Shown here piece by piece: positions 16,591 to 62,149 of a stretch of DNA of 64,000 nt (position 1 is the stretch's first letter; each line of letters opens with the position of its first letter). Under the pieces are notes generated by a model, which did not search any database, was not told where the DNA came from, and saw only the letters and a program-made list of their open reading frames with translations. This DNA is from Dimorphilus gyrociliatus (lineage: Eukaryota; Animalia; Annelida): positions 1 through 64,000 of the forward strand of contig CAJFCJ010000022.1 of the NCBI GenBank assembly GCA_904063045.1. Reading direction: 5' to 3'. A program made the translations under genes and the position numbers.

Positions 16591-17451
16591 ATGGATAAAC
16601 AAACTGAGCTAGATTCCTTAACGCCACATCCCTTATCTAATGATATTAAGACGGCTTGGAGGGAATTTCAAAAAACCAAGAAATGTATAAAGCTTGATAA
16701 AAAGGAAGTTTTTGACATCAAGCATATTCGAAGGTACAATAAATTACGTGTAGTTTGTATTTCTGATACTCATAGTCAACATCACAAAATGAAAATACCG
16801 GATGGAGATGTTCTTATTCATGCTGGAGATTTTACAAGACAAGGAGGAATTCAGGAAGTGCAGGATTTTAATGAATTTTTAGGCAAATTACCTCATAAAC
16901 ATAAGATTGTTATACCTGGAAATCATGAATTGTCCTTCGACCCACCGATTGATCGCCTAGGAGAAAACAAAACCAATAGCGATTTAAAAAGATTAAATAT
17001 TAGCCATCCTCGAGAACTTATTACTAATGGAACTTGTCTAATTGATGAGGAAGTTGTTATCAATGGAGTCAAAATTTATGGATCACCCTGGCAGCCAGAA
17101 TTTTGCTCTTGGGCCTATAATCTGGATAGAGGTGAACCTCTTTTAAATAAATGGAAAAAGATACCTGTTGATACTGATATCCTAATTACTCATGGACCTC
17201 CAATGGGGCACGGTGATAAAATTCAATATAATTTTCATGTTGGCTGTGTTGATCTACTATCGGTCATAGAATGTATAAGACCCCGCTTTCATATATTTGG
17301 TCATATTCACGAAGACTATGGTATTACAACAGATGAGAATACTATTTTTATCAACGCGTCGTCCTGTAATCTTCGATATAAACCTATAAACCCTGCGATT
17401 ATATTCGAAATAGAGAAGAAAAAGAGAGAAGAACTCGAGGTGGACGATTAG
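16591..17451 (+). CDS. MPPED1/2: Metallophosphoesterase domain-containing protein (MPPED1/2 family)
   Basis: ISDTH, HAGDFT, PGNHE, THGPP and GHIHE metal motifs intact, plus GSPWQPEF; single exon, first ATG at 16591. Confidence 0.9.
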   Translation: MDKQTELDSLTPHPLSNDIKTAWREFQKTKKCIKLDKKEVFDIKHIRRYNKLRVVCISDTHSQHHKMKIPDGDVLIHAGDFTRQGGIQEVQDFNEFLGKLPHKHKIVIPGNHELSFDPPIDRLGENKTNSDLKRLNISHPRELITNGTCLIDEEVVINGVKIYGSPWQPEFCSWAYNLDRGEPLLNKWKKIPVDTDILITHGPPMGHGDKIQYNFHVGCVDLLSVIECIRPRFHIFGHIHEDYGITTDENTIFINASSCNLRYKPINPAIIFEIEKKKREELEVDD

Positions 17452-52234: not shown

Positions 52235-53470
52235 CTCTAAGATTTGCTCAAAAATTATCGGATGATTGAAATATAGGCCTCAGTGTTCACAAAAAAAATC
52301 AATTTTTTAACTTTTTTTTTAAAGAAAATATGAAAAATTAAAGAAAATATGGTAATCTTTTAAAGAAAAGTCAGTCTTAAAAGTATTAAGATTCTAGACT
52401 AGTCGTAAATTATCATTTCAAAATAGTATAGACATTTTTAATTTTTCGCGAATGGAATAATATCTTATCTTATCTTTTTGAGAATAGGGAATTTATTATT
52501 TATTGTACATGCATTATGATAGTTATGGATGTTTAAGTTGATTAACAATGATATATCAGATAATTGAATTAGTTTAAAGTCTCTTCCAGAAGTAATATAA
52601 GATTGTTATAGATTAATTAAGTGAACTTTCATTCCCTCTGTCAGTTTTTTTCCCATCTATTCACGAATAACTTATTAAGTGAAGAGTATATTAACTCCCA
52701 TTCCAAGATATCTTCAAAGTGAATGTTAATAAACTACACTAAATTTGTATATATGTACGTGTAAATGATCTTATAATCAGTTATTAAGGTTTTTGGAGGA
52801 AGAAGAACTTGTGGAAAGTTTAACAGACAAGATAAATTCACTAAATAGAGTATAATATATAAATGATAATAACAAAACAATAATCATGATTTATTAAAAC
52901 TTTATTAAAATCATATAGAAAAATCATTATTCGTAGTATATAGATGTTTTTTATTGAAATTGTTATATAAAACGTTACAGTTTTTTGGGTAATTACGTGT
53001 CAGCGTTCATTTTTTACGGACAGACAGATTTTTTTTAAAGCTACATGTCGAGCAATGTCATGTTGTTTTTGTCCCCAAAAAGAGAAGAGAGCATTTGCCA
53101 CGTTGAAACTTCAAAAAAAACTGTTTTTGAGCAATGAAAACACAGGTGTATAACGAAATTTTCTTGTCCGCCCCCATACGAGGACAGTCGGAGACAAGAG
53201 TTCATAGCGTCAATTGCTGTAAGTTATTTTAAGTATAATTTTTCATTATTCTACTGATAAAACTATAAAATAAAACTTAATATTTCATTGATACGGTTGA
53301 TAATAATGTATTTTTTTCATATTTTTATATAAACAAATAGGACAAGCAGTATTCACCAAAGTTTTGCGGAAACAAAAGTCTCACTTTGGGAAGGTAAACA
53401 TCTATTTAAATAAAATTTGTATATGAATAAATTTTAAAATGCGTTTTTCATCCATAGAGTAAACTCTTTG

Positions 53471-53968
53471 ATGATGCTTACGATTGTTGTATTGTGTATA
53501 GTTGGACAAGCAATTTCGGCTCCCTTCGGTAATCGTAGATTAATTATAGATGAGGAGGAGGTAGCCGGAAGATTTTCAGAAATGATAATGAAACCATGCG
53601 ATTCCAGTCCATGCTTTAATGGTGGGACCTGCGAAAATTTGAACGACGGTAGCAATTTTGAATGTAGGTGTTTGCCAACTTATTTAGGCACACAATGCAA
53701 CATCAAGGTGAACTTTTGTCTGTCGGAACCTTGCATGAATGGAGCAACCTGCAGCAATACCTCTACGGGACCTTTGTGTACTTGTGCCGCGGGATTCACC
53801 GGCACTGTATGTCAACATTTGACCAACAGTTGCAATTCTAATCCTTGTTTAAACAATGGAATTTGCATAGAATCAGAGAGTAGTTATGTTTGTTCGTGTA
53901 AAGCCTGTTTCTTTGGTAGAGACTGTGAGAGAATTGTAGTTGATTGTCAGTCTGATATTGTAATGTAA
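53471..53968 (+). CDS. Small secreted 3-EGF protein (gene C, inverted paralogue)
   Basis: Signal peptide LCIVGQAISAP resembles [11 protein letters not shown] (A) and CLLLGQVIVS (B); three EGFs; upstream TATATAAA (~53327) and a 5'UTR intron 53394-53456. Confidence 0.82.
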   Translation: MMLTIVVLCIVGQAISAPFGNRRLIIDEEEVAGRFSEMIMKPCDSSPCFNGGTCENLNDGSNFECRCLPTYLGTQCNIKVNFCLSEPCMNGATCSNTSTGPLCTCAAGFTGTVCQHLTNSCNSNPCLNNGICIESESSYVCSCKACFFGRDCERIVVDCQSDIVM

Positions 53969-55618: not shown

Positions 55619-58600
55619 TTACTTTTGTTTTTGGCATCTCTTTCCTTTCCAAGGTTTCTTACATTTGCATTTGTAACCATATTTATAATTCTTACAAATG
55701 CCACCATTCAAACAGGGAGAACTACTGCAAGCATTCTTCGATTTTTCACAATATTTTCCTTTATATCCCTTCGGACACGAACATTTGAATCCACCTTTAT
55801 AATCTTTACACTTTCCACCATTTTTGCAGGGGTTAGGATTACAGGTACCCTTTTTGAGCTCGCAATGTTTTCCATAATATCCTTTCTTACAATAACACTT
55901 GTAAAAGAAGAAACCTATTGGCTTACATTTTCCACCATTTTTACAAGGCTTAGATTTGCATGGATACTTTGCAATAATAGGTTTTTCACAATATTTTCCA
56001 GTATATCCTTTCGGACACGAACATTTCACGCCACCTTTATATTGTGTACACTTTCCACCGTTTTTGCAGGGATTAGGTTTACAGGTATCCTTTTTGAGCT
56101 CGCAATGTTTTCCATAATATCCTTTTGGACAGTAACACTTGTAAAAGAAGAAACTTATTGGCTTACATTTTCCACCATTTTTACAAGGATTAGGTTTGCA
56201 TGGATACTTAATAGGCTTTTCACAATATTTTCCAATATATCCTTTCGGACACGAACATTTCACGCCACCTTTATATTGTGTACACTTTCCACCGTTTTTG
56301 CAGGGATTAGGTTTACAGGTATCCTTTTTGAGCTCGCAATGTTTTCCATAATATCCTTTTGGACAGTAACACTTGTAAAAGAAGAAACTTATTGGCTTAC
56401 ATTTTCCACCATTTTTACAAGGATTAGGTTTGCATGGATACTTAATAGGCTTTTCACAATATTTTCCAATATATCCCTTCGGACACGAACATTTGACTAT
56501 GCCTTTATAATCATTACACTTTCCACCATTTTTACAGGGGTTAGGTTTACAGATATCCTTTTTGTGCTGGCAATGTTTTCCATAATATTCTTGTTTACAT
56601 TTGCAAGAATATTTATTAGTTTGCTCTAGGCAAGTTCCACCATTTTGACAAGGACTCGAGTTACATTCCTTTATATCCTCATCGCAATTTATTCCGGTAT
56701 TTCCCGGACTACATTGACAAGTATAACCATTTACCCCATCTTTACAAGTTCCGCCATTCAAACACGGAGAAGAAGCGCATTCATTAATATTTATCTCGCA
56801 ATCGTCTCCGGAGAAACCAGGTAGACAGTTACATTTATAGCTATTTCCAAATGGTTGACAAACTCCACCATTCTGACAAAAATTTGGGTTACAAGGGTTT
56901 TTGAGCGTACATTTACAAATATCATGAGTTATTTTACTCTTATATTTTCCCAAATCATTGAAACTATCAATGTAAATGACTTTGCTGGCATCACTGGCAA
57001 TTCCTTCAATTTCGGATTTTTTAAAACGAGGCCCTACTGAAACAACAAATATTTTAACGCCAAGTTTTGTAAACATTTTCAATTGATTAGCTGTTGGAAC
57101 GGTCTTGGCCTTATTTTTGTTTGATGGTCCATCCGTGAAAAGAACAACAATATTTGGAATATTTTCTCTCTCTCCATTAGACACTTGAAAAACATGATCC
57201 ATTTCTAATTGAAGAGCATCCGCTGTATTTGTCAATCCACGGGAATATGGAATTGCATCAATTGCAGAAAGAATGCTAGCTCTATTGTTGTAATCATCAA
57301 AGTCGAACCTTAACACCGCTTTAGTTCCAAAAGTAATTGTTCCTATCCGTGTATGCGACGGAGAAATATCAAAAGCATCAGTCAGATCTCTAATGAAGCT
57401 TTTTTGTAAATTGAAGTTTAGATTTCCAAGAGAACCGCTTGTATCTATAATCCAGGAAAGATCCATCGGATTACACTCTAAAAAAAACATACAAATTAAC
57501 AATATCATTCATATTGGTAACATTTGACTTACCAAGGCTACATAACTTTCCAAAAAATCCAGACTTACATTCACAGTAAAAGCCATCTTTAACATTTTTA
57601 CATATACCGCCATTGTTACAAGGATTTGTCGGTTTACAAAAATCTTTAAGTTCGCAATTGCTTCCGGAATATCCAAAAGGACATTTGCATATATAACCAG
57701 ATAGCTGGTCAACACATGTACCACCATTCAAACATGGATTTTTCAAAAAACATTCGTTTTTATGCTCACACTTCTTTCCATAATAACCAGGAGGACATTT
57801 ACATGAATAGCCAAATTTATGACCAAAACATGTACCACCGTTAAAACAGGGATTATTTGGAAAACATAAGTTTTTGAATTCACACTTCTTTCCATAATAA
57901 CCAGGAGGACATTTACAAAAGTAGCCATTTGGTAAATCATTGCATATTCCGCCATTTAGACATGGATTTTTCGGTATACATTCGTTTTTCAGCTCACAAT
58001 GCTTTCCATAATATCCAGGGGGACACTTACAGAAATAACCAGCTTTTTGTTCAATGCATTTACCACCATTATAACATGGATTTTTTGGGAAACAGTTGTG
58101 TTTAAACTCACAATTCTTTCCGTAGAATCCAAGAGGACATTTACAAAAATAGCCATTTGGTAAATCATTGCATATTCCGCCATTTAGACACGGATTTTTC
58201 GGTACACATTCGTTTTTCAGCTCACAATGCTTTCCATAATATCCAGGGGGACACTTACAGAAATAACCAGCTTTTTGTTCAATGCATTTACCACCATTAT
58301 AACATGGATTTTTTGGGAAACAGTTGTATTTAAACTCACAATTTTTTCCATAGAATCCAAGAGGACATTTACAAAAGTAGCCATTTGGTAAATCATTGCA
58401 TATTCCGCCATTGAGACATGGATTTTTCGGTATACATTCGTCTTTCAGCTCGCAATGCTTTCCATAATATCCTAGGGGACACTTACAGATATAGCCAATT
58501 TTTTGATCAATGCATTTACCACCATTATAACATGGATTTGTTGGAAAACATGAGTTTTGTTCCTGACAAAGCTTTCCAAAATATCCAGGAGGACATTTGC

Positions 58601-61600
58601 AAAAAAAGCCATTTGGTAAATCATTGCATATTCCGCCATTGAGACATGGATTTTTAGGTACACATTCGTTTTTCAACTCACAATGCTTTCCATAATATCC
58701 TAAGGGACACTTACAGATATAGCCAAATTTTTGTTCAATGCATTTACCACCGTTATAACATGGATTTTTTGGGAAACAGTTGTATTTAAACTCACAATTC
58801 TTTCCGTAGAATCCAAGCGGACATGTACAAAAATAGCCATTTGGCAAATCATTGCATATTCCGCCATTTAGACAAGGATTTTTCGGTTTACAGTCGTTTT
58901 TGAATTCACAATTCGGTCCAAAATATCCTAGGGGACATGTACAAAAATATCCAATTGGTAGATCATTGCATGTTCCGCCATTTTTACAAGGATTTTTTGG
59001 TAAACAGCTATTTTTGATTTCACAATTCTTTCCAAAGTAACCCAGGGGACACTTGCATGAATAGCCAATTGGTAGATCGATGCATGTTGCGCCATTTTTA
59101 CATGGTTTTTTGGTTATACATTCGTTTTCAAGCTCACAATTTTTTCCACTAAATCCCTTGGGACACGAACATGAATATCCAACTGGTAGATCATTACATG
59201 TTCCGCCATTTTTACAAGGATTTTTTGGTAAACAGCTATTTTTGATTTCACAATTCTTTCCAAAGTAACCCAGGGGACACTTGCATGAATAGCCAATTGG
59301 TAGATCAATGCATGTTGCGCCATTTTTACATGGTTTTTTGGTTATACATTCGTTTTCAAGCTCACAATTTTTTCCGCTAAATCCCTTGGGACACGAACAT
59401 GAATAGCCAACTGGTAGATCATTGCATGTTCCGCCATTTTTACAAGGATTTTTTGGTAAACAGCTATTTTTGATTTCACAATTCTTTCCAAAGTAACCCA
59501 GGGGACACTTGCATGAATAGCCAATTGGTAGATCGATGCATGTTGCGCCATTTTTACATGGTTTTTTGGTTATACATTCGTTTTCAAGCTCACAATTTTT
59601 TCCACTAAATCCCTTGGGACACGAACATGAATAGCCAACTGGTAGATCATTACATGTCCCGCCATTTTTACAAGGATTTTTTGGTAAACAGCTATTTTTG
59701 ATTTCACAATTCTTTCCAAAGTAACCCAGGGGACACTTGCATGAATAGCCAATTGGTAGATCAATGCATGTTGCGCCATTTTTACATGGTTTTTTGGTTA
59801 TACATTCGTTTTCAAGCTCACAATTTTTTCCGCTAAATCCCTTGGGACACGAACATGAATAGCCAACTGGTAGATCATTGCATGTTCCGCCATTTTTACA
59901 AGGATTTTTTGGTAAACAGCTATTTTTGATTTCACAATTCTTTCCAAAGTAACCCAGGGGACACTTGCATGAATAGCCAATTGGTAGATCAATGCATGTT
60001 GCGCCATTTTTACATGGTTTTTTGGTTATACATTCGTTTTCAAGCTCACAATTTTTTCCGCTAAATCCCTTGGGACACGAACATGAATAGCCAACTGGTA
60101 GATCATTGCATGTTCCGCCATTTTTACAAGGATTTTTTGGTAAACAGCTATTTTTGATTTCACAATTCTTTCCAAAGTAACCCAGGGGACACTTGCATGA
60201 ATAGCCAATTGGTAGATCAATGCATGTTGCGCCATTTTTACATGGTTTTTTGGTTATACATTCGTTTTCAAGCTCACAATTTTTTCCACTAAATCCCTTG
60301 GGACACGAACATGAATATCCAACTGGTAGATCATTACATGTTCCGCCATTTTTACAAGGATTTTTTGGTAAACAGCTATTTTTGATTTCACAATTCTTTC
60401 CAAAGTAACCCAGGGGACACTTGCATGAATAGCCAATTGGTAGATCAATGCATGTTGCGCCATTTTTACATGGTTTTTTGGTTATACATTCGTTTTCAAG
60501 CTCACAATTTTTTCCGCTAAATCCCTTGGGACACGAACATGAATAGCCAACTGGTAGATCATTACATGTCCCGCCATTTTTACAAGGATTTTTTGGTAAA
60601 CAGCTATTTTTGATTTCACAATTCTTTCCAAAGTAACCCAGGGGACACTTGCATGAATAGCCAATTGGTAGATCAATGCATGTTGCGCCATTTTTACATG
60701 GTTTTTTGGTTATACATTCGTTTTCAAGCTCACAATTTTTTCCACTAAATCCCTTGGGACACGAACATGAATATCCAACTGGTAGATCATTACATGTCCC
60801 GCCATTTTTACAAGGATTTTTCGTTATACATTCGTTTTCAAGCTCACAATTTTTTCCGCTAAATCCCTTGGGACACGTACATGAATATCCAACTGGTAGA
60901 TCAATGCATGTTGCGCCATTTTTACATGGTTTTTTCGTTATACATTCGTTTTCAAGCTCACAATTTTTTCCACTAAATCCCTTGGGACACGAACATGAAT
61001 ATCCAACTGGTAGATCATTACATGTTCCGCCATTTTTACAAGGATTTTTCGTTATACATTCGTTTTCAAGCTCACAATTTTTTCCACTAAATCCCTTGGG
61101 GCACGAACATGAATATCCAACTGGTAGATCAATGCATGTTGCGCCATTTTTACATGGTTTTTTCGTTATACATTCGTTTTCAAGCTCACAATTTTTTCCG
61201 CTAAATCCCTTGGGACACGTACATGAATAGCCGATTGGCAGTTGCTTACAAGTTCCACCGTTTTGACACGGATTAGGGTTGCAATCGCTTGCTGTTGCCT
61301 TGCAGGTTTCATCCAGTATTATTGCTTTATATTTTTCCAAATCGTTGAAATTGTTTACTTTTATGATTTTTGACTTATCTGTTGCTATTGCTTCTATTTC
61401 ATTGTTATTTATGTTGCTTCCTACAGGAACAGCAAATACGGTTACGCCAAGATTAGTCGCTTTCTTCAATAAGTCAGCTTGTGTTTTAGTACCCCCTGGA
61501 TTAGCTGAGGCACCATCTGTGAAAACAAGTGCAATATTTTTTATCTTTATTCTATCTCCATGTATGGGAACAAAGATTCGTTCTCTTGCAAGTTTTAGTG

Positions 61601-62149
61601 CTAGGTCCGTTCGTGTACCTCCATTGGGAAAAGTGGTAGTTGCAAGCGCGTTTAGAATAAGTTGTTTGTTAGAGTTGAAATCATTCAGATCAAACCTTAC
61701 AATCGCGTTGTGGTCAAAAATAATTGCAGCTACTCGTGTTTTTGTAGGGCCTACATCGAATGAATCGGTAAGGCCTTTAATGAAATCCATTTGCTTTTTA
61801 AAATTGCTAGATCCAATTGACCCACTGCCATCTATAATCCAGCAAAGATCTACTGGAGCGCATTCTGAAACAATAATAAGTGTTTTTAAAGTTATAAAAT
61901 TGAGACGATTGACTTACCGAGCTCACATCGTTTTCCAGCAAAACCAGGTTTACATATGCATTCAAAATCGTTTTTAATATTATTACACTTCACGAACCTT
62001 CCTGCAAAGCAAGGATTTTTGGAACATAAATCAGTTGTCAGGGACACTCTTCCATTTTCAGCAGATGATTCATTCAATACTGAAGTCTCATCACCTAGTG
62101 AAACGATGACTTGCCCCAGAAGGAGACAAACCCATATAACCCGTAACAT
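55619..62149 (-). CDS. Secreted SP-EGF-vWA-(EGF)33-vWA-(EGF)11 protein, ~2,140 aa (gene B)
   Basis: Exons 62149-61918, 61864-57533 and 57477-55619 sum to 6,423 nt in frame with phase-1 GTAAGT/AG introns. Both vWAs have intact MIDAS (DGSGS, DTSGS); the C-terminal EGFs are very K/Y/F/P/G-rich. Confidence 0.9.
58980..60720 (-). repeat. 228-nt (2-EGF) tandem repeat, 7 full copies plus partial flanks
   Basis: Shadow ORFs at 59114, 59342, 59570, 59798, 60026, 60254, 60482, spaced 228 nt; the copies are protein-identical. Confidence 0.95.

Follow-up and report, generated by a model that had tools for sequence, protein, structure and literature searches.

An exceptionally lysine- and tyrosine-rich EGF tail in a predicted VWA-EGF protein of the annelid Dimorphilus gyrociliatus, possibly convergent with EGF-based mussel adhesives

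Gene B of the annelid Dimorphilus gyrociliatus, which appears to be a three-exon gene on the minus strand, ends in eight EGF domains that are exceptionally rich in lysine and tyrosine. On balance, we lean towards a reading in which the Gene B product is a secreted matrix, glue or cocoon protein and this polycationic, aromatic tail, arrived at by convergence, is the end through which it is anchored or cross-linked. The tail seems to resemble mussel glue proteins in chemistry and not by descent, which would make it convergent with both Pvfp-5beta (Perna viridis foot protein 5beta) and Mfp-2.

The window, i.e. the whole stretch of DNA that was analysed, comprises 64,000 nucleotides and also encodes an MPPED-like protein, with database matches at 60% identity or less. 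The D. gyrociliatus protein DgyrCDS8533 has a coding locus of 100% identity in the same assembly, in agreement with the species assignment. Coordinates of the Gene B features are collected in Table 1. Exon 1 starts with an ATG at 62149, the hydrophobic N-terminus reads MLRVIWVCLLLGQVIVSLG in the sequence, and the exon ends with C-E-L-G before a GTAAGT donor. Joining across intron 1 restores the frame (...CEL-E-CAPVDLCWIIDGSGS). Joining across intron 2 would give ...CSL-E-CNPMDLSWIIDTSGS, in parallel to the exon 1/2 junction, and with respect to the VWA domain the two introns are placed alike. With all three exons joined and the domains counted, the predicted product is a secreted, modular protein of ~2,140 aa and 233 kDa that contains 45 EGF domains in all. 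The three-exon join was used for domain and charge counts only, and searches were run exon by exon.

After the signal peptide, exon-wise Pfam scans gave the domain order EGF, VWA + 33 EGF, VWA + 11 EGF, with strong scores both in exon 2 (VWA E 1.7e-33; EGF in 33 stretches, E 5.5e-288) and in exon 3 (VWA E 6.4e-35; EGF in 11 stretches, E 7.2e-74). Both VWA domains keep the MIDAS (DTSGS and DGSGS, T in G-x-T-N/R-T, D in F-T-D-G); for domain 2, the translation shows DTSGS together with the Thr of GLTNTADAL and the Asp of LFTDG. According to Tandem Repeats Finder, exon 2 contains 15 copies of a 228-nt two-EGF unit with 91% matches. The net charge of its EGFs is +1 to +4 per domain.

Table 1. Positions of Gene B features in the window.
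Feature	Position	Strand	Description
Gene B exon 1	61918..62149	(-)	start codon, signal peptide, one EGF; Pfam EGF E 1.8e-6
Gene B intron 1	61865..61917	(-)	53 nt, phase 1; GTAAGT...TTTCAG
Gene B exon 2	57533..61864	(-)	VWA domain 1 + 33 mildly basic non-Ca-binding EGF
Gene B intron 2	57478..57532	(-)	55 nt, phase 1; G|GTAAGT donor, T8-AG acceptor; predicted from sequence
Gene B exon 3	55619..57477	(-)	VWA domain 2 + 11 EGF + stop codon (55619-55621)
VWA domain 2	56945..57463	(-)	PF00092, residues 16-188 of the 629-aa ORF; all MIDAS residues
Three ordinary EGFs, numbers 35-37	56567..56893	(-)	net charge -1 to +2; Ca-binding consensus in one
Tail: eight Lys/Tyr-rich EGFs, numbers 38-45	55622..56566	(-)	315 aa, last residues of Gene B
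Tandem array, 234-nt two-EGF unit	55743..56592	(-)	Tandem Repeats Finder: 3.6 copies, 92% matches, 0 indels, score 1373
FFFY loop copy 1, EGF 39	56375..56386	(-)	read from sequence
FFFY loop copy 2, EGF 41	56141..56152	(-)	read from sequence
FFFY loop copy 3, EGF 43	55901..55912	(-)	read from sequence

The original prediction had placed a Lys/Tyr/Phe-rich EGF tail at the end of Gene B, built from a 234-nt two-EGF unit and carrying an FFFY aromatic loop, and all of this was borne out. The tail is found where it was predicted, with 24.7% K (78 Lys), 9.5% Y (30 Tyr), 3.8% D+E and 0.3% Arg, which amounts to a net charge of +67 and a pI of 9.55 for the tail alone (35 kDa). Tandem Repeats Finder returned the 234-nt period with 3.6 copies, and three copies of the loop were located. 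The repeat with the FFFY loop followed by GYYGKHCELKK occurs twice verbatim, and a third copy differs by three substitutions. After EGF 45, the protein ends with QKQK and the stop codon, with no sequence beyond.

The six-cysteine EGF scaffold is complete in all eight tail EGFs, with all 48 cysteines and the Gly/Pro framework kept, and Pfam PF00008 was reported for eight stretches (E 4.3e-60, 199.9 bits versus a cut-off of 21.5). In three of the tail EGFs, an extra residue puts FFF(Y) at the tip of the major hairpin; an AlphaFold2 model (pLDDT 80.6) predicts that the I-S-F-F-F stretch is the turn between its two strands. The model has the EGF fold, and Foldseek gave matches to Notch and Del-1 EGFs.

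The Ca-binding consensus D/N-x-D/N-E/Q before Cys1 was found in none of the eight tail EGFs and in only one of the 45 EGFs of the whole of Gene B, and the Pfam scan gave no report of PF07645 (EGF_CA) for the tail. The consensus had been described as lost from the tail repeats. Its absence is confirmed, but not its loss: since 44 of the 45 Gene B EGFs are without it, it was not lost in the tail, and is missing there only by comparison with the neighbouring Gene A. The O-fucose consensus is present in Gene B EGFs 2-22 and nowhere in the tail. All 30 tail tyrosines lie within two residues of a lysine. Direct Y-K adjacency was observed 18 times, versus 14.3 +/- 3.2 expected by shuffling (p = 0.16), which gives no indication that Tyr-Lys pairs were selected for over and above composition.

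In order to place the tail among the EGFs of its own genome, we took 24 stretches of D. gyrociliatus DNA, which together hold 415 other EGF domains. These domains had a mean net charge of +0.23 (sd 1.77, maximum +5) and at most nine K+Y, compared to a net charge of +6 to +9 and 10-13 K+Y for each EGF of the tail. Among 240 database matches, the highest K content was 12.2%, about half of the 24.7% in the tail. No orthologue carrying the same tail was found. A search of the ESM Atlas returned generic EGF clusters only, and scans of metagenome data gave no match for a tail pattern of 12 protein letters and 12 matches for GYYGKHCE, none of which (0/12) was a Lys/Tyr-rich EGF array.

The distinctive motifs of the tail point back to Gene B itself. 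Its K-Y-x-C linker and GYYGKHCELK are also present in distal EGFs of exon 2, tail and distal exon-2 units share 52-57% identity, and the best own-genome matches outside the tail come from Gene B exon 2 (54-56% identity). We infer that a two-EGF unit descended from the distal exon-2 EGFs gave rise to the tail array through tandem duplication. The exon-2 EGFs have roughly half the lysine content of the tail on the shared scaffold.

If the tail anchors a secreted material, a rigid, disulfide-locked EGF rod would display a dense surface of lysine and aromatic residues and serve as a polycationic sticky end, holding polyanionic partners through charge, cation-pi and hydrophobic contacts. Such partners might be wet surfaces of mineral or biofilm, acidic proteins, for example Gene A, or the sulfated or carboxylated glycans of mucus, cocoon or cuticle. 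The tail might also be a Lys/Tyr substrate for oxidative cross-linking, and the MIDAS-intact VWA domains would tie the Gene B protein into the matrix. The main ORF of Gene A (5,333 codons) has a net charge of -474 and a pI of 4.2. It is conceivable, if improbable, that Gene A and its tandem paralogue Gene B form a two-component secreted material made almost wholly of EGF domains, with Gene A as a polyanionic Ca-binding rod, Gene B as a polycationic rod and the Lys/Tyr/Phe tail (+67) as the docking or coacervating end. If true, this would be a DOPA-free annelid glue, mucus or cocoon matrix set by charge and Ca2+. Sandcastle worm cement, with its oppositely charged proteins, is analogous in principle, though Gene A and Gene B would use folded EGF modules.

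The basic EGF tail could equally bind glycosaminoglycans of an internal basement membrane, and the Gene B protein may prove to be an ordinary matrix component. It would then be a matrilin- or fibropellin-like connector with the tail as its heparan-sulfate- or glycosaminoglycan-binding end, and would take no part in adhesion to the outside, in mucus or in the cocoon. We regard this as unlikely, but as an explanation to be taken seriously. The VWA-EGF-VWA order with intact MIDAS is matrilin-like, all database matches are generic EGF matrix or signalling proteins, and the D. gyrociliatus genome has many other VWA-EGF genes. However, a charge of +67 in 315 aa, contributed almost exclusively by Lys (Arg 0.3%) and combined with aromatic hairpin tips, is far beyond anything in the 415 other EGFs of the genome, and the tail also exceeds all 240 database matches (maximum K 12.2%).

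Rather than a non-covalent adhesive, the tail might mainly be a substrate for oxidative cross-linking in a covalently hardened structural protein of the egg cocoon or fertilisation envelope, with dityrosine formed by secreted peroxidase and Lys-derived links by lysyl oxidase. At least four loci for animal peroxidase (PF03098) and one for lysyl oxidase (PF01186) were found in the D. gyrociliatus genome by the same search route that gave no tyrosinase candidate (see below), the rigid scaffold of the tail carries 78 Lys as well as 30 Tyr, the eggs of D. gyrociliatus are deposited in cocoons (PMC5101659), and octopus egg tethers are made of a non-Ca-binding protein with 29 EGFs (PMC10336842). Nevertheless, we consider a mainly cross-linking role rather improbable: neither the peroxidases nor the lysyl oxidase are linked to Gene B by position or expression, and the octopus protein, octovafibrin, assembles via terminal lectin domains and not via Lys/Tyr-rich EGFs.

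Conversion of the tail tyrosines to DOPA, which had been suggested as one option for the tail, found no support in the genome searches. A profile search for tyrosinase (PF00264), run without a positive control, gave no candidates in the 77.9-Mb D. gyrociliatus assembly, and it is peroxidases and lysyl oxidase that were found. The chemistry of the tail is probably DOPA-independent.

The tail could also belong to a shorter protein if exon 3 were a separate gene. The minus-strand ORF 55619-57508 is open over 629 codons, and from its in-frame ATG at 57508, which is followed by a short hydrophobic stretch (MILLICMFFL), it would encode a VWA + 11-EGF protein of its own; without splicing, the exon-2 frame runs into a stop 20 codons past the donor. 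Several observations make two genes a poor prospect. The ATG at 57508 sits within the 55-nt segment that is flanked by the consensus GTAAGT and T8-AG, and the exon 2/3 junction repeats the intron 1 junction in phase and position. As separate genes, the exon-2 and exon-3 ORFs would overlap by 38 nt, which leaves no space for a promoter. Moreover, a protein database search with the 629-aa ORF did not return a self-match, so the public annotation differs from the 629-codon ORF.

The original prediction likened the tail to Mytilus Mfp-2. The comparison of Lys/Tyr/Gly/Pro-rich, non-Ca EGF chemistry stands (pI 9.55 versus 9.5), but no support was found for the shared ancestry it had allowed for. A true Mfp-2 relative would share ancestry with the Mytilus protein and carry Tyr hydroxylated to DOPA for metal-mediated cohesion or adhesion. 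Apart from the basic EGF array and the similar pI, such kinship would fit the occurrence of automatic names like 'adhesive plaque matrix protein 2' among the database matches, but the proteins so named are not Lys-rich and only 39-44% identical. Mytilus Mfp-2 itself is absent from the best 120 of 1,272 matches. CKPNPC, which had been taken for a trait of Mfp-2 (CKPNPCKN-type), is no such marker, as the neighbouring Gene A, strongly acidic and Ca-binding, contains 17 copies. In addition, the distinctive motifs of the tail are found again in Gene B exon 2, the architecture is unlike that of Mfp-2 (two VWA, 45 EGFs, 233 kDa), and no tyrosinase domain was found in the assembly, in a search in which control genomes were also silent. 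Together, these observations make a true Mfp-2 relative that works through DOPA very improbable.

PDB searches provided Pvfp-5beta (7QAB) as the mussel comparator. By sequence, it matched the tail with E 7e-16 and 63 bits per two-EGF unit, and its 55% identity over 75 columns was the highest among the PDB structural matches listed. Yet EGF units of an unrelated metagenome protein and the Gene B exon-2 units both have the same 52-59% identity to the tail. As unrelated EGFs equal the 7QAB identity, 52-59% represents a generic ceiling for this type of EGF. In a nearest-neighbour BLAST with 2,108 two-EGF units from the window, 23 other loci and the 240 database matches, unrelated EGFs and own exon-2 units were likewise both at 50-59% identity, so EGF-level similarity cannot decide between descent and convergence. 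Identity to 7QAB is no higher than to unrelated EGFs, and the likeness to Pvfp-5beta is thus best read as convergent.

The tail repeat units are under purifying selection (pairwise dN/dS 0.21-0.47, dS 0.07-0.76). GC3 was 0.288 in the tail, 0.259 in exon 2 and 0.262 in the VWA part; as the tail is not below the rest of Gene B, local AT drift does not explain its composition. Compositional drift without function, i.e. enrichment of Lys, Tyr, Phe, Asn and Ile from AT-rich codons in a relaxed repeat, is barely credible. In its favour, the codons for K, Y and F are rich in AT, as is the genome (31% GC). Against it, GC3 is not lower in the tail than in exon 2, dN/dS stays at 0.21-0.47 with dS up to 0.76, the scaffold retains 48 of 48 cysteines along with its Gly and Pro framework, and Asn is lower, not higher, in the tail (5.7% versus 10.8% in exon 2).

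The need for DOPA in the adhesion of EGF-based mussel proteins is still debated. Gene B provides a natural folded EGF array whose hairpin tips are aromatic and whose lysine content reaches 25%, and no tyrosinase domain was detected in the genome. If adhesive, the tail would allow wet adhesion by Lys and aromatic residues, or assembly driven by charge, to be studied without DOPA, in a tiny, culturable marine annelid with a compact genome. An internal control is at hand in the exon-2 EGFs of the same gene, with a common scaffold and about half the lysine content.

Among known systems, matrilins are vertebrate VWA-EGF-VWA-coiled-coil matrix adaptors with 1-10 EGFs. Gene B shares with them the order of VWA, EGF array and VWA, the intact MIDAS and (by prediction) secretion, but it has 33 + 11 EGFs, no C-terminal coiled coil and a polycationic EGF tail after the second VWA. 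The best statistical matches in all searches are Notch/Delta/fibropellin-type hEGFs (DLL1 4XBM with E 3e-71, Notch1, Del-1), which share the C-x-P-N-P-C-x-N-G-G-x-C framework. The charge of these hEGFs is acidic or close to neutral, and many of them bind Ca and are O-glycosylated, whereas each tail domain carries +6 to +9 and the Ser/Thr for O-fucose has been lost.

EGF arrays recur in invertebrate holdfasts, in those of mussels as well as in octovafibrin, scallop Sbp9, sea-star sfp3/sfp4 and ascidian APAP-1 (PMC12817120); octovafibrin, the octopus egg tether, has 29 EGFs that do not bind Ca (PMC10336842). By analogy, the Gene B arrays might likewise serve as long, disulfide-locked, load-bearing or cohesive secreted material. 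However, none of these proteins is described with a Lys/Tyr-hyper-rich EGF sub-array, and the assembly domains of octovafibrin (C-type lectins) and Sbp9 (Calx-beta-type calcium-binding) are unlike those of Gene B.

Mfp-2, with a pI of 9.5 and 11 tandem EGFs (PMC9999432), is a cohesive matrix protein of the plaque core and not an interfacial glue (PMC9999432, PMC12817120). Mfp-2 / Mgfp-2 (UniProt Q25464) and the tail are both Cys-rich tandem EGF arrays with a pI of ~9.5, secreted in the one case and predicted to be so in the other. Mfp-2 is a 45-kDa protein of 11 EGFs without VWA and with 5 mol% DOPA, compared to 45 EGFs, two VWA and 233 kDa for Gene B, and its cohesion is triggered by Ca2+ and Fe3+, whereas the tail is without the Ca-binding consensus. 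Pvfp-5beta has two EGFs and a pI of 9.2 (PMC6709630), and DOPA is not required for it to adhere and coacervate (PMC9314366, PMC6709630). It is a free mussel primer of 82 residues and 9.4 kDa with 21 mol% Tyr and about 11 mol% DOPA; the eight EGFs of the tail terminate a VWA-EGF protein of 233 kDa and contain 24.7% Lys and 9.5% Tyr, the latter well below 21 mol%. What the two appear to have in common is a secreted, folded, non-Ca-binding tandem EGF array that is basic and decorated with Lys and Tyr, residues that the fold suggests to be surface-exposed in the tail.

The tail of Gene B, a three-exon gene on the minus strand whose last eight EGF domains (EGFs 38-45) make up the tail, is genuinely rich in lysine and tyrosine, far beyond chance. 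Its composition is 24.7% K, 9.5% Y, 13.0% G, 9.5% P, 15.2% C, 3.8% D plus E and 0.3% R, with a net charge of +67, a pI of 9.55 and a mass of 35 kDa. Individual tail EGFs contain 7-9 lysines and 3-4 tyrosines, never more than one acidic residue, and all have a pI above 9. For comparison, we took 415 EGF domains outside the tail, found in the window and in 23 other stretches of the D. gyrociliatus genome. Their net charge averaged +0.23 (sd 1.77, maximum +5), with maxima of 5 for K and 9 for K+Y, versus +6 to +9, 7-9 and 10-13, respectively, for the tail EGFs. The closest of the 415 were the distal EGFs of Gene B exon 2. Among 240 database matches to exon 3 or the tail, the lysine content reached at most 12.2%. 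The repeat motif quoted in the original prediction is found verbatim in the tail, and both the 234-nt two-EGF unit and the FFFY codons were recovered (see table). Two exact-motif scans of a metagenome collection returned 0 matches and 12 irrelevant matches, and an ESM Atlas search generic EGF clusters only.

Features of Gene B and its surroundings (positions in the window)
Feature	Position	Strand	Basis or detail
Gene A	51830 down to ~33948	minus	signal peptide and EGF exon, VWA exon, EGFs, as in Gene B
Gene B, exon 1	61918-62149	minus	ATG at 62149
Two-EGF unit in Gene B exon 2	57846-61274		228 nt, 15 copies, 91% identity
629-codon open frame	55619-57508	minus	VWA domain and 11 EGF stretches
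Tail, eight EGFs, 315 aa	55622-56566	minus	cysteine-framework split of the translation
Two-EGF unit in the tail	55743-56592		234 nt, 3.6 copies, 92% matches, no indels, score 1373 (Tandem Repeats Finder)
FFFY codons	56375-56386, 56141-56152, 55901-55912
Small EGF ORF between Genes A and B	53468-53968	plus
MPPED2-like gene	16591-17448	plus	intronless

The 629-codon open frame encodes a VWA domain (E 6.4e-35) and then 11 EGF stretches (E 7.2e-74) according to Pfam; the cysteine-framework split of its translation gave three ordinary EGFs, followed by the eight tail EGFs. Exon 1 codes for a single EGF preceded by a signal-peptide-like N-terminus; its last residues, C-E-L-G, lie before a GTAAGT donor. 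An AG acceptor 53 nt further on opens a new frame beginning E-C-A-P-V-D-L-C-W-I-I-D-G-S-G-S, which is VWA domain 1, with 33 EGFs next. The exon 2 frame, in which several adjacent copies of the 228-nt repeat are identical at the protein level, ends with C-S-L-G, again before GTAAGT, and 55 nt later a T8-AG acceptor leads into VWA domain 2 (E-C-N-P-M-D-L-S-W-I-I-D-T-S-G-S). Both introns are in phase 1 and at an equivalent position relative to the VWA domain, and the MIDAS residues of the VWA domains are complete. Joined, the exons form one frame of 2,140 codons; this model was built by script for domain counting, and the searches were run on single exons. Judged by these sequence features, the three exons very probably constitute one gene, the alternative being that the 629-codon ORF is translated independently and not spliced to exon 2. 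As a single gene, Gene B is predicted to encode a secreted VWA-EGF-VWA-EGF protein.

Gene B and the neighboring Gene A are tandem paralogues of opposite charge. The 5,333-codon main ORF of Gene A has the cbEGF consensus throughout, with a net charge of -474 and a pI of 4.2, versus +126 and 8.8 for Gene B. The small ORF between them starts with a signal-peptide-like N-terminus, after which come three or four EGF domains; it could be a single exon of a longer gene. More VWA-plus-EGF genes are found on contigs of the same assembly (C22:120000-127000, C1:559000-571000, C5:3105000-3109500 and C11:941513-944750), one of them only about 60 kb from the window on the same contig. The assembly (349 contigs) also encodes the public D. 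gyrociliatus protein DgyrCDS8533 with 100% identity. The window also contains an MPPED2-like metallophosphoesterase, with a best database relative only 60% identical; the database matches listed did not include a self-match, despite public annotation of D. gyrociliatus.

AT-biased drift does not account for the lysine and tyrosine load, because GC3 is not lower in the tail (0.288, versus 0.259 in exon 2 and 0.262 in the VWA part) and asparagine is decreased rather than increased. All scaffold cysteines are retained, and pairwise comparison of four tail units gave dS values of 0.07-0.76 and dN/dS ratios of 0.21-0.47. A search of the D. gyrociliatus genome placed the best non-tail matches in Gene B exon 2, with 54-56% identity, and in Gene A, with 43-46%. 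When 36 two-EGF units were aligned, the tail unit had 52-57% identity to the distal units of exon 2, versus 33-45% to those of Gene A. Tail and distal exon 2 units have in common the K-Y-x-C linker, N-G-G-K-C and G-Y-Y-G-K-H-C-E-L-K, and the FFFY loop corresponds to the exon 2 K-F-G-Y loop with one inserted residue. Net charge per EGF climbs along Gene B from +3/+4 to +7/+9. EGFs 2-22, 32-33 and 36-37 carry the O-fucose consensus C2-x4-S/T-C3, which EGFs 23-31 and 38-45 have lost; in the tail, Ile or Lys takes the place of Thr. Tyrosine content and net charge rise towards the C-terminus over the span of this loss. Together, the charge gradient, the O-fucose pattern and the motifs common with exon 2 argue for a local origin, the tail apparently being a derivative of Gene B's own repeats with added lysine enrichment.

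DOPA chemistry, originally suggested for the tail, is unsupported, since a six-frame profile search of the 77.9-Mb assembly for the tyrosinase domain PF00264 gave no candidate. With the control genomes silent too, this negative result is suggestive only. Tyrosinase loss is reported for Alvinella, also an annelid (PMC12403961). The same kind of search identified at least four animal peroxidase loci and one lysyl oxidase locus, and cross-linking through either enzyme is possible.

The tail EGFs are hyper-cationic, aromatic and folded, lack the consensus sites for Ca binding and O-fucosylation, and are under purifying selection. The tail is proposed to act as a polycationic sticky end that would use charge, cation-pi and hydrophobic contacts to bind wet surfaces or polyanionic partners. 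Alternatively, it could be a Lys/Tyr substrate of cross-linking. The VWA domains would link the protein to a matrix. Candidate settings are mucus, adhesive gland secretion, cocoon or an internal matrix; D. gyrociliatus is described as having cocoons, gland cells and, in dwarf males, adhesive glands (PMC9687449, PMC5101659).

Two mussel proteins are relevant for comparison. Mfp-2 (45 kDa, pI 9.5, 5 mol% DOPA) belongs to the matrix of the plaque core and consists of 11 tandem EGFs; it has a cohesive role, with Ca2+ and Fe3+ as triggers of cohesion (PMC9999432, PMC12817120, PMC6244088). Pvfp-5beta, a two-EGF protein with 82 residues and a pI of 9.2, contains Tyr at 21 mol% and DOPA at about 11 mol%; it is secreted before other proteins, and its recombinant form is adhesive without DOPA (PMC4640085, PMC6709630, PMC9314366). 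The tail matched Pvfp-5beta (7QAB) with an E-value of 7e-16, and per two-EGF stretch the score (63 bits) was about that of the best DLL1 stretch (65 bits). In an AlphaFold2 model, one tail unit adopted the EGF fold (pLDDT 80.6), and I-S-F-F-F formed the turn of the major hairpin. Foldseek ranked Del-1, Notch and DLL1 highest, and 7QAB had the highest identity among the matches listed (55% over 75 columns). This identity is no sign of kinship, because in a nearest-neighbor test with 2,108 two-EGF units, EGFs that are unrelated, such as those of the metagenome protein P0158, reached 50-57%, equal to Gene B exon 2. The acidic Gene A contains 17 copies of CKPNPC, the motif taken originally as a hallmark of Mfp-2. 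Matches whose automatic annotation reads 'adhesive plaque matrix protein 2' (in Patella, Dendronephthya and Stegodyphus) are not lysine-rich, and a recent review considers EGF similarity at the domain level insufficient for Mfp-2 identity (PMC13608469). The mussel analogy holds for the chemistry of a basic Lys/Tyr EGF array, and is not supported for descent or DOPA. The tail belongs with EGF-based secreted matrix or adhesive proteins. Its pI of 9.55 compares with 9.5 in the published description of Mfp-2, and its tyrosine content of 9.5% is below the 21 mol% of Pvfp-5beta.
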